From Takakia lepidozioides (lineage: Eukaryota > Plantae > Bryophyta), in contig CM060734.1 of the NCBI GenBank assembly GCA_030704615.1, positions 38,502,001 to 38,566,000 on the forward strand: 64,000 nt of DNA, written 5' to 3'. This document shows positions 32,683 through 40,284 of this stretch, piece by piece. Made by a program: the position numbers and the translations under genes. The notes under the pieces are model-generated. The model was not told the DNA's origin. It was given only the letters and a program-made list of their open reading frames with translations, and ran no database searches. How positions within the stretch are numbered: the first letter of the stretch is position 1; each line of letters begins with the position of its first letter.

Positions 32683-35600
32683 ATGGCCACATTGCACTCA
32701 CCGCTATCAAAAACTGCTGGATCCAAGGCATCGGAGCTGTCTCCTCGGGCGGGTGTAAGATCCCTTCTTGGAGGAAGAAAGATGAGTTCACCTTCTGCGG
32801 AGTCGCACTCTCAGTTCCATCCTGCAGATTTCACTCAATTGAGGCTCACTGCAGGTCCAGCTTGTCTCCTCAGCGTTGTGGTGCTTCTCCATGTGCTCGT
32901 TCTCGCTTTGAGCATCTTTTCCACCTGCACAACACTCCACATGACACATGTTGTCGGAAGATAGATCATGAGGGGACAAAAGAAAAAGAAAGCTGAACCC
33001 GACGCATAATTTGTACGGTTTTTTTGGTTTTATAGGACTGGTCTAATCTGTACTCTTGGTATTCCAGAAAAGATGATGCAGGACCAGGCGTGTGTTCAGA
33101 CAGAGCTCAAAATACTGGTAATATTCTCACAGGTGCTGAACTTCTGGGGAGTAGATGAAAATTCTCGGCCGTCAGTTGCTTTGTTGATATGGAGGTTGTT
33201 GGCGCCTAAATACCACTCTGTTACTAATTACTGCGGAACTATTGTACTTCTTGGCAGAAAACAAAGCTCCAAAAATCAGAAGAGCAGATCCAGATTTTGG
33301 AATCCAAGTTGCAGAAAGCCAACAATGAGAAGACGATGTTGAAGGTTACGCAGCAGGAGGACCTAAAACTTGTCAATGGTCTTGAATCGAAGTTATTTAT
33401 GACGAATACAGTCTGTGATCAACTCACAGAGACCTTACAACACATGGAGATACAACTCCAAGAAGGTTCACTTCTATCATGCTCACAGGGAATTTTGTCA
33501 TTTGTGGTCTGGATTTGCACCTCACTGAATTGAGTTCGACCAGAGGCTCAAGAAGAAATTTCTTACACACCCCCTTGACGCGTACAAATTTCAATTGTGA
33601 AGGAGTGGGCTCATTGTGCACATTCGTTCTGAGTGCAGTTGAACGAAGCAAGATATGTCTCCAAGAGAACTTGGCTGAACGACTTCAGTTGAGTGAAGAA
33701 GAAAAACTCCAGATTGATGAATTGTCGCTAAGGAGGAGTACCGATGAAGCAGCAATCAGTCAATGTAAGCATTCCCCTTCAGATATCTCATGAGTGGTCA
33801 CTCGTGTGCAGTTTCGTTTTGCATGTCACACGCGTCAACAACCGAATGTATGCATCTTCAGGGAAGTCACGCCATGAGGAGCTGAAGGAAGCACTTAAAG
33901 CAAAGGAAGAGGCTCTCGACTTTGAAGTCGCCAAATCTAGACAGCTGGCTGCAAAGAAAGGTACCAATGTTTTGGAAAGCCCAGTCTAGAGTGTTTGGTC
34001 AGATGTATCTATGGATCGGCTTTCTGTCGCAGGTGATAGATAGCTAATCCAGAGCATCTATCATAACAAGGACAAATTGATGCACATAATTGTAGGTTTG
34101 TCGACAATATGCCCTTTTACATAAGGGCAATGCTACTAAACATACAACTTGCTGTTTGGCAGACGAGGTAGAACAGCAGTTGGGAGCAGCCAAGCAGACC
34201 TCTGAAGAAGACAAAGCAACGTTTGTCTTTCTTCACGAGAAGTTTCTTATGGAAACAGGAAAATGCATGGAACGGGCTGAAGCAGAACGGCAGAGTAAGG
34301 AAAAGGCCCTACATGACTTGCGGGAGCTTAATGCAGAGCTAAAATCCACACATTTGAGTCTGCAGCATCAACTGCAGGATGCCACAAAACAGATTACTGT
34401 GCTGGAGCAGCATCTTGAAAATAGTACATCCACACATTTGAGTCTCCAGCAGCAACTGCAAGATGCCACAAAACATGTTATGGAGCTGGAGCAACTTCTT
34501 GAAATCAGTAAAAAAGATGCTGCAGCCAATCTAATTGATGCACAAGAAGAAATAAAAGAAGTGAAGCAAATGACTGAAGAGAAGGTGAAGGAGAAGGAGA
34601 GACTTGATGCGGAGATACACAACCTGAAAGAAAAGAACGAAAAGGTGACAGCAGCAGTCAAAATTACTGAAGTACTGCTTAACACGTGTATATCTGTCAC
34701 TGAGCAGGTCAAAATATTTTTTGACAATATTGTTTCTTGTTCCCAGAATTCGACAGAGCTGGCTGTGATGGCAAGGAACATGTTAGAAGCTAAAGACCAA
34801 TTTGAGCTTCAACTCCAAGCAAAGCAGGCTCAGTATACCAAGCACCTGGATGAACTCCTGCAGCAAACCAATCAGGTGAAAGGATTTGAGGGTTCAGTTC
34901 AAAGGCTTAGAGCTTATTTCAGTCATTATATTCTTGGTCTCAGGAATCACAGAGATACTGAACCTGAAAGAACACAATTCAAAGGTGACAGTAGTAGTCA
35001 AAATTACCAAAGTACTGCTTGAACGTGTGTATCTCAGTCACTGAGCAGGTCAAAATATTTTTTGACAATATTGTTTCTTTGGTCCCAGAATTCGACAGAG
35101 CTGGCTGTGATGGCAAGGAACATGTTAGAAGCTAAAGATCAATTTGAGCTTCAACTCAAAGCAAAGCAGGCTCAGTATACAAAGCACCTGGATGAACTCC
35201 TGCAGCAAACCAATCAGGTGAAGGTGTTGAGGGTTCAGTTCAAAGACTCAGAGCTTGTTTCAGTCATTATACTCTTGGTCTCAGGAGTCACAGAGATACA
35301 GAACCTGAAAGAACAGAATGGAAAGGTGACAGCAGTAGTCAAAATTACTGAAGTACTGCTTTAACGCATGTATCTCTGTCACTGAGCAGGTCAAAGTATT
35401 TTTTGACAATATTGTTTCTTGTTCCCAGAATTCGACAGAACTGGCTGTGATGGCAAGGAACATGTTAGAAGCTAACTATCAATTTGAGCTTCAACTTGAA
35501 GCAAATCAGGCTCAGTATACCAAGCACCTGGATGAACTCCTGCAGCAAACCAATCAGGTGAAAGGTTTTGAGGGTTCAGTTCCAAGACTCGGAGCTTGTT

Positions 35601-38600: not shown

Positions 38601-40284
38601 CCGTGTACTTTCTTATCCCCAGATCTGCACCCAGGTGGCTCTGGTTGAACAGTCGATGGTGGACAATAAGAGGCAAGCAGAGCTTGAACTTGAAGCCAAG
38701 CAGGCTAATCTGACGAAGCGTCTACAGGAGATCTCACAGCGTAACCATCAGGTTGAGGAGATTTCCCTGTTACTTTAGTCTACTAAGAGGTGACAAATCA
38801 GTTTTGCAAGGACTGGTGTAAAACGGTCTCACGTTTGCTTTGTATATGTGCAGGAAATAACTGGTATGAAAAGAAAGTATGAAGCTGAAAAGAGGGAGGC
38901 TGTATCAACAGAAGTCAAAGCAGCCCAGCAGGTGACCAAGGAGGCTTTGAAGGAGAAGCAGAGGCTTGAGGATGTGATACAGGACCTACAGAAGAAAATA
39001 CAAGTAAGCGATTGATTCCCTCCCATCTGCATGCTCACTGTTTGTACCTTTTTTTGAAGTAGGTTTATATGCTGCATTTCTAAGGAAACATCCGCGGACG
39101 TTATAAAGCACCATTTCATTTCATTTATCGCACATTATAAAGTACCATACCATTTCATTTCATTTCATTTATCCCAGCATGGCACGTGTTGACTGTGGTA
39201 GAAGCTAACATGCTGGAAGTCAAGCAGCAGGTTGAGCTTCAACCTGAAGTGAAGCAGGCAGAATTTCATACTTATCTAGAAGAGATTTTACAGTAGGGCA
39301 AGCAGGTAACTAGCATAAATACACTCTACGGAAAAGTGAAGTAGTGAGAAAGTAGGGGGTGAAGTTCTTCTAGATCTAGCCAATGTCTTTGTTATCCTAG
39401 CTCAAGACAATTTTGAGGGTGATGCTTGCAGAGACCTAGTCTCCGTCCTGCTGACATGCCCATGTGTTTCCTACATATGCTAGTCAGAGAGCTACATCCT
39501 GCCCCTTCCACTCTTTGTGTGACAGGCAGTGCAACCACAGCTACTTGCCACATCTGTGTTCTGAGCATTGTTCGTGTAGGATGTCAATGACAAGATTATA
39601 CTCACACCGTCATTTTCTATTTTGGAAATACCTTAAGTTTAGTAAAAGTTTCTGTGGCAGGTTACACAGTTTTCCCAGCACAAAGTTGCAGTTAATTATG
39701 ATGGAAGGAAGACTCGGGCAAGAAAGGAGCGGCATACAGTTATCGAGCAACAGGCTCAACCTGAAGTAAGGTCAAACAGGGGAAAAGGGCATGCCCGTAA
39801 GAAGGCGAGGCTGACTGAAGACATTTATCTGGTAAGTTACAGCTTGTTATGGCCTAAGAACTCTTGCAATAATCACTCTGGAGCCTTCACATAGCAACCA
39901 TCAGTTTTTCATGTCTTTTGGGTTCAGCAGGAAAAGTACCCTGAGGCTACAAGTCCACGAAAAATGAAACATGAAGCCCATTAGCAATTTGAGACCTCAA
40001 TTTCTGCTGTCCATGCTGATCACACAGTGACTCTTGTCTTCCTTGTTCAATGAGTTGACAAACAAATATGCCTTCTTTATTATTTCACCTATCAAACTCT
40101 CTGGCCCAGATAAAATGTGGTTGTATGATATAGTCCATACCCACGTAGTTGTTGTCCAATTGTTCCCTGATCTCCTCTTTATATTTGGCAGCAAGAGGCG
40201 AGTAATTGCCCACCTGTGGCAGCTCTTGGGAAATTCGTACCTGTGGATGCATTTGGAATCGCTGATGACCCCTACAATTTCTGA
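32683..40284 (+). CDS. ZYP1: synaptonemal complex transverse filament protein ZYP1-like with an amplified coiled-coil exon array
   Basis: N-terminal FTQLRLTAEKMMQDQACVQTELK and QEDLKLVNGLESKLFMTNTVCDQLTETLQH match ZYP1 hallmarks; repeat module matches the ZYP1 KQLELSRHLKELSQRNDQ/AINEIRRKYDVEK segment; C-terminus ADDPYNF*. Exons 32683-32854, 33068-33117, 33258-33465, 33639-33764, 33862-33960, 34163-34644, array 34747-39003, 39661-39831, 40192-40284; alternative in-frame ATG at 32632. Confidence 0.85.
34645..39305 (+). repeat. tandem intron-exon array within ZYP1 (three subfamilies, periods about 341, 490 and 605 bp)
   Basis: A exons (129 nt) start at 34747, 35089, 35429, 35813, 36304, 36808, 37416, 38017 and 38623; B exons (153 nt, last one 150) start at 36074, 36564, 37130, 37733, 38338 and 38854; degenerate A copy at 39178-39305. 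Confidence 0.92.
39091..39170 (+). mobile_element. two stacked RTE-X-like 3'-end insertions in a ZYP1 intron acceptor tract
   Basis: TCCGCGGACGTTATAAAGCAC(CATTT)3 followed by ACATTATAAAGTACCATAC(CATTT)4; each runs into TTTATC. Confidence 0.75.

Follow-up and report, generated by a model that had tools for sequence, protein, structure and literature searches.

A ZYP1/ZEP1 homolog of Takakia lepidozioides with an intragenic array of symmetric coiled-coil exons and a predicted long rod

The gene and its identity

We analyzed a stretch of 64,000 nucleotides (nt) from Takakia lepidozioides (GenBank assembly GCA_030704615.1, contig CM060734.1, positions 38,502,001 to 38,566,000 of the forward strand), hereafter called the window, in which an earlier note had recognized a gene for ZYP1, the protein that forms transverse filaments in the synaptonemal complex (SC), with a modular array of coiled-coil exons. 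A gene model was built from splice sites with the phases checked, and searches were run exon by exon. The resulting gene lies on the plus strand at positions 32632-40284 of the window and comprises 23 exons, all of which are open, have canonical splice sites and join in consistent phases. The note had confined its feature to 34645-39305, and these borders had to be given up: position 34645 is the donor of exon 6 and 39305 the end of a broken exon copy. Summing the exon lengths, with the remnants described below excluded, gives a protein of ~1,175 amino acids (aa) if all repeated exons, termed A and B, are included; the size of ~1,160 aa estimated before was thus close, although slightly too low.

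Exon 1 (32632-32854) begins with ATG, contains 74 codons plus 1 nt, encodes a proline-rich N-terminal head and fits exon 2 in phase; it aligns with residues 1-59 of Diphasiastrum ZYP1 (E = 2e-6) and 15-60 of the Marchantia protein. Exon 2 (33068-33117) shares 56-60% identity with Marchantia 62-77 and Diphasiastrum 61-75. Exon 3 (33258-33465; 69 aa) encodes the conserved N-terminal block of ZYP1. When it was compared by phmmer with 1.84 billion representative proteins, 62 matches were obtained; those with a name are plant ZYP1/ZEP1 (synaptonemal complex protein ZEP1, 1 or 2), and others are listed as hypothetical proteins. The best full-length ones, with E-values down to 8e-14 and 58-63% identity, are proteins of 830-1,060 aa that align at residues ~60-145, the N-terminal position expected for ZYP1. 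The species include Cryptomeria, Ginkgo, Wolffia, Zingiber, Salix, Linum, Selaginella and Diphasiastrum, as well as Adiantum, Ceratopteris, Marchantia, Riccia and Chara, and the identity to vascular-plant ZYP1 (58-61%) is higher than that to liverwort ZYP1. Exon 4 (33639-33764) matches Marchantia 129-159 (E = 2e-6), and exon 5 (33862-33960) is placed on the basis of phase and splice sites only.

Further downstream, all A copies align to one and the same place in the homologs (Cryptomeria 691-734, Diphasiastrum 534-574, Ginkgo 527-570, Marchantia 416-455), the copy A7 (37416-37544) with 52-59% identity to the first three, and all B copies align to the residues directly following that place, in Riccia as well. 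The boundary between A and B is an exon border in the Riccia sorocarpa gene also. At the C-terminus, exon C1 (39661-39831; 57 codons) encodes a basic tail with weak likeness to the conserved basic tail motif of the homologs, and the last exon, C2 (40192-40284, stop codon included), ends with DDPYNF before the stop, where Marchantia has DDPYNFDG and most plants DDPYAFD. No proline is encoded from exon 2 to B6. AlphaFold models exon 6 as one helix over residues 2-159 (pLDDT 95) and module A, represented by A7, likewise as one helix (pLDDT 95); the modeled protein has a long central helical rod, which may pair into a coiled coil.

Because of the N-terminal block, the place of the A-B segment, the exon border between A and B, the DDPYNF end and the proline-free helical rod, the gene is, on sequence grounds, a homolog of ZYP1/ZEP1 and the predicted transverse filament of the SC, in agreement with the earlier assignment. 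The N-terminal block, the proline-free rod, the A-B segment with the same exon border, the basic tail and the terminal DDPY.F are shared with the plant ZYP1/ZEP1 proteins, such as Arabidopsis ZYP1A/B, rice ZEP1, Marchantia Mp2g20890 and Riccia sorocarpa KAL3698846. However, these proteins carry the A-B segment once, whereas here A is present nine times and B six times.

Pfam contains no family for any of the exons, weak coiled-coil look-alikes remaining below the cut-off; exon 6 as the sole query had no match in the protein collections, and no relative turned up when metagenomes were scanned, once with exon 3 and once with the A alignment. In a survey of 2014, moss proteomes yielded no ZYP1-like protein (PMC4132317), and a survey of 2023 reported ZYP1 in all major plant lineages (PMC9957857).

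The array of A and B exons

A scan for open segments bounded by AG and GT in phase 0-0 recovered exactly nine A exons of 129 nt (43 aa) and six B exons of 153 nt, the last one of 150 nt (51 and 50 aa, respectively). Each of them is preceded by a pyrimidine tract and AG and followed by GT, and together they encode 692 aa. The copies fall into three subfamilies. The first (NSTEL type) consists of A1 (34747-34875), A2 (35089-35217) and A3 (35429-35557) without B exons, and the second (ILAEL type) of A4 (35813-35941), B1 (36074-36226), A5 (36304-36432) and B2 (36564-36716). The third (ICTQ type) contains A6 (36808-36936), which is closest to the canonical motif, followed by B3 (37130-37282), A7, B4 (37733-37885), A8 (38017-38145), B5 (38338-38490), A9 (38623-38751) and B6 (38854-39003), which has 50 codons after the loss of one in-frame codon. 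Nucleotide identity amounts to 93-98% inside a subfamily, compared with 53-60% between the A subfamilies and ~70% for B between subfamilies. Tandem Repeats Finder delimits a unit of 341 nt present three times (34612-35631), one of 491 nt present twice (35764-36747) and one of ~605 nt present four times (~36690-39040). These units contain exons plus introns, both of which were copied, and the introns of the array measure 77-213 nt.

The number, phase and canonical GT-AG sites of the A and B exons, the three subfamilies with three, two and four A copies, the duplicated introns and an array size of ~690 aa had all been described in the earlier note and were found again here, and its statement that skipping any A or B exon preserves the frame follows from the common phase 0-0. 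It had further remarked that an A plus B unit of 94 aa makes 13 heptads plus 3, which would imply a register break in each module. The arithmetic holds, but a crude and ambiguous heptad scan placed no break.

Tandem repeats of 0.3-0.6 kilobases (kb) are hard to assemble, which could speak for an over-expanded repeat in the assembly. However, assembly errors produce identical copies, while the divergence of the copies observed here is 2-8% inside subfamilies and above 40% across them, and each copy has private substitutions and intron indels. This divergence rules out a simple assembly artefact, and we consider an over-expansion of the repeat highly improbable.

In addition to the intact exons, a number of incomplete ones lie in line with them. 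Subfamily 1 has kept just the last 33 nt of B. The strong acceptor upstream of these tails would define exons of 41 nt that shift the frame (34944-34984 and 35285-35325), while a weaker AG would define 30 nt in frame (from 34955 and 35296, respectively). A possible B-like mini-exon of 25 codons, bounded by AG and GT in phase 0-0 and with a weak donor, is located at 35646-35720. A tenth A copy (39178-39305) is broken; it has 128 nt, contains an in-frame TAG and is out of frame with its own good acceptor. If spliced in, it would give four codons and then a stop, making it a potential poison exon. With ~60-62% identity to each of the three subfamilies, it is about equally distant from all of them. 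After C1, a good acceptor precedes 18 codons and a stop (39928-39984); this may be a tail exon that has decayed, or else an alternative last exon.

Homologs of at least 450 aa were scanned with local profiles of A and B. All homologs that matched the A profile (23/23, from Chara to angiosperms) have one significant A. The B profile is weaker and was detected in fewer homologs, and where it was detected there is one significant B right after A. Likewise, a 27-kb Riccia locus contains one A, and an internal repeat at E<1e-4 was found in none of 18 homologs. These counts support the view that the A-B array is unique to this gene among the homologs compared, and they bear out the earlier claim that other plants carry the segment once. 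In the literature we found no report of a ZYP1 exon array, nor of the width or dimensions of the SC in bryophytes.

The second half of A harbors a block of 21 aa, LEAKQA.LTKHL.EISQRN.Q, that is better conserved, from Chara to angiosperms, than any other part of the rod and that the four ICTQ copies (A6-A9, 36808-38751) keep almost unchanged. The array may consequently multiply a binding or assembly site as well as length. Taken further, the selected effect would be valency and not length, with the block acting as an interaction motif in up to nine copies, four of them near-canonical. However, the five other A copies have drifted from the motif and, to our knowledge, neither a partner nor a function of it is given in the literature. 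We regard selection for valency as improbable, although less so than an assembly error.

Constraint on the copies and length of the rod

A comparison of exon and intron divergence, which had been proposed as a check on the array, was performed on four independent copy pairs (u1-u2, u4-u5, u6-u8 and u7-u9), with the substitution counts summed exon by exon. The exons differ at 45 of 972 sites and the introns at 88 of 813 (Fisher p = 8e-7), corresponding to a divergence of 4.6% and 10.8%, respectively, so that the exons change at 0.43 times the rate of the introns. The exons show a single indel, the in-frame loss of a 3-nt codon in B6, whereas the introns show many, including a deletion of ~90 nt. 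The ratio of the proportions of non-synonymous and synonymous differences (pN/pS) is 0.13-0.34 in subfamily 1 and 0.32-0.57 in subfamily 3. Between subfamilies it is 0.37-0.58, with a pS of 0.6-0.75, close to saturation. Since the exons stay open, have retained splice sites and phase and diverge at less than half the pace of the introns, the A and B copies look coding and under constraint. For stretches of 43-51 codons to remain open with intact splice sites at near-saturated pS, selection is expected, and the decayed tenth A copy serves as an internal control that shows the fate of a copy without constraint.

We used the longest proline-free stretch as a proxy for the rod. By this measure, inclusion of all A and B exons would make a rod of ~1,030 aa here, compared with 617 aa in Marchantia, 655 aa in Riccia and 681-751 aa in Diphasiastrum, Adiantum, three angiosperms and Chara; Ceratopteris has 773 aa and the Cryptomeria model, which is possibly incomplete, 874 aa. 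With every exon spliced in, the rod would reach 1.4-1.65 times the length found in nine homologs (617-751 aa). The non-repeated part of the rod includes exon 6 (34163-34644), which contributes 160 codons, the last ~35 of which are B-like ('B0'). Exon 6 also holds an 84-nt tandem duplication (34345-34512) whose copies are 86-87% alike. Its 28 aa correspond to exactly four heptads, and with this duplication the same rod has been lengthened in a second way, its register being preserved.

While the rod is extended by the array, the part following it is shortened: 87 aa are encoded after B, compared with ~410 aa in Marchantia, which comprise a proline-free coil of 145 aa plus the tail. As the gene is without the coil and tail that usually come after B (~300-400 aa in Marchantia and Riccia), the net gain is less than 600 aa and the length is partly a replacement. 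In Arabidopsis, residues 661-725 of ZYP1B in the distal coil form the PCH2-binding segment, and their deletion leaves polymerization intact but blocks the recruitment of PCH2 and the removal of ASY1 (PMC9825157). Unlike Arabidopsis ZYP1B, the predicted protein has no counterpart of this segment and lacks most of the tail.

Origin, splicing and significance of the array

With about even confidence, we propose that the locus is a ZYP1/ZEP1 gene whose A-B pair was amplified in place and whose exons are constitutively included, resulting in a long rod. The starting point would have been one adjacent exon pair, A with 43 aa and B with 51 aa, in the best conserved part of the coiled-coil rod, which was probably amplified by repeated unequal crossing-over. 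In subfamily 1, the B tail is joined to the intron that follows A. Old rounds would have given rise to the three subfamilies, now very different, and to one copy that has since decayed, and recent rounds to the two to four copies inside each subfamily. The last round was probably the duplication of a two-unit block of ~1.2 kb, because A6 resembles A8 and A7 resembles A9 (u6~u8, u7~u9) and the introns match likewise.

Splicing in plants relies mostly on intron definition, and exons are seldom skipped. Given introns of 77-213 nt, most or all A and B exons are therefore expected to be constitutively included, and the short introns argue for such inclusion over a ladder of lengths generated by skipping. 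The broken tenth copy and the B-tail remnants would be ignored by splicing, as real genes often ignore such pseudo-exons. The product would then be ~1,175 aa long and have an uninterrupted helical rod of ~1,030 aa, which partly replaces the distal coil and tail.

Alternatively, each mRNA may contain only a subset of the modules, selected alternatively or in a mutually exclusive manner, which would yield a near-canonical rod or a ladder of lengths, i.e. a tunable ruler; four ICTQ units, for example, would give a rod of ~700 aa. All 15 array exons being in phase 0-0, any subset stays in frame, and the ~320 aa of rod outside the array plus three to four units equal the 617-751 aa of the homologs. 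In animals, tandem duplicated exons are often mutually exclusive (PMC9741552), and clusters such as exon 5 of SNAP25 (PMC2581893, PMC9741552) likewise consist of homologous exons of equal length and phase with duplicated introns. In contrast to mutually exclusive clusters, however, the 15 symmetric exons found here can be included together; their phases are compatible, the introns have at least 77 nt and no frame rule forces a choice, so that exclusivity is not enforced. It is also easier to understand how three subfamilies stayed open across saturated synonymous divergence if all of them are translated, and exon skipping in plants is rare compared with intron retention. We consider splicing of a subset unlikely, and a length-tunable ruler is speculation. 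The copy number of the array may vary between individuals or related species.

Several observations weigh against a functional gene with constitutively included exons. Among the elements in line, splicing of either 41-nt remnant or of the tenth A copy, or use of the acceptor at 39928, would give premature stops. Subfamily 2 shows 8 non-synonymous and 1 synonymous differences (pN/pS ~2), an excess at third codon positions, taken over all copies, does not reach significance (p = 0.17), and the pairwise figures for all copies are mutually non-independent. Most plants have less degenerate C-terminal motifs, and nothing anywhere in the window corresponds to the distal segment of the Marchantia, Riccia, Diphasiastrum or Adiantum protein. 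A profile of 12 ZYP1 proteins together with single window exons gave 10 matches, none of them from the source species; the protein searches also turned up nothing from a near relative and no protein derived from a transcript, and the comparison with the Riccia locus revealed no neighbors in common and no synteny. Finally, a second ZYP1 may be present elsewhere in the same genome.

The pseudo-exons, together with the loss of the distal coil and the degeneration of the tail motifs, keep in play the idea that the gene is a decaying or non-functional copy of ZYP1, either a paralog or the gene of a lineage with relaxed need, whose array is neutral debris of unequal crossing-over. The broken tenth copy and the frame-shifting remnants, which lie in line with good splice sites, are in keeping with such decay, as are the absence of the distal coil and of most of the tail, the pN/pS of subfamily 2 and the missing synteny with Riccia. 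On the other hand, each of the 23 exons has an open frame, canonical splice sites and a consistent phase, exon 3 is closer to vascular-plant ZYP1 (58-61% identity) than to liverwort ZYP1, the exons change at less than half the rate of the introns and the subfamilies remain open despite a saturated pS. Decay of the gene thus appears to us about as doubtful as splicing of a subset of modules.

Regarding the surroundings of the gene in the window, arrays of a short palindrome (TACCCT...AGGGTA), repeated in tandem with periods of 42 and of 63 nt, are found just upstream of its start (31174-32294). Its neighbor is an intronless gene for a 1-Cys peroxiredoxin of 221 aa on the minus strand (42217-42879), with 85-86% identity to Riccia, 83% to Calypogeia and 80% to Diphasiastrum, and with no moss among the best 120 matches. 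Open reading frames of a Ty3/gypsy-type long terminal repeat retrotransposon (gag, reverse transcriptase, RNase H and integrase zinc finger) occupy positions 49214-53478 of the plus strand, a stretch rich in G+C (0.51-0.56). Further features are exons of a gene with multiple Myb repeats (8379-10638, minus strand), of an IF-2-like translation GTPase (18356-21580, plus strand) and of a protein of the AtTam38 family (61651-62253, minus strand).

Few features of meiosis are as strongly conserved, despite sequence drift, as the SC width of ~100 nm and the coil length of SC proteins, the coefficient of variation of length of Caenorhabditis SC proteins being ~0.03-0.04 (PMC8598163). The link between coil length and the width of the SC or polycomplex that had been drawn for the array is backed by published work: lengthening the coil of yeast Zip1 changed SC width (Sym and Roeder, 1995; PMC2199901), and coil-length variants of mammalian SYCP1 alter SC or polycomplex width according to references cited in PMC8598163. 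A change of this kind is the effect one would expect here. The engineered Zip1 and SYCP1 proteins are laboratory constructs, however, whereas the gene described here would be a natural variant. Modular molecular rulers lengthened by duplication of modules are exemplified by the super-repeats of nebulin and by phage tape-measure proteins. The predicted protein is like them in being modular and helical with a length that could set a dimension, but it is unrelated to them in sequence and cell biology, and a ruler role is an analogy.

Should all A and B exons be spliced in, the rod would be ~1.5 times as long as the norm and the SC could be wider or differently packed, an outcome that we hold to be doubtful. 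If the gene were silent or only partly spliced, it would be simply an example of unequal crossing-over inside a gene. If the proposed long rod is real, this would be a natural ZYP1 that is half longer in its rod and devoid of the usual distal coil, an outlier to the rule of conserved length, and it would raise the questions of whether the SC widens, whether the rod folds or tilts, and whether the recruitment of PCH2 and the patterning of crossovers are altered. To date, coil length has been shown to set width only in engineered variants of Zip1 and SYCP1; the Takakia gene would provide a natural test of the transverse filament as the ruler of SC width, and of the effect of that width on crossover control.

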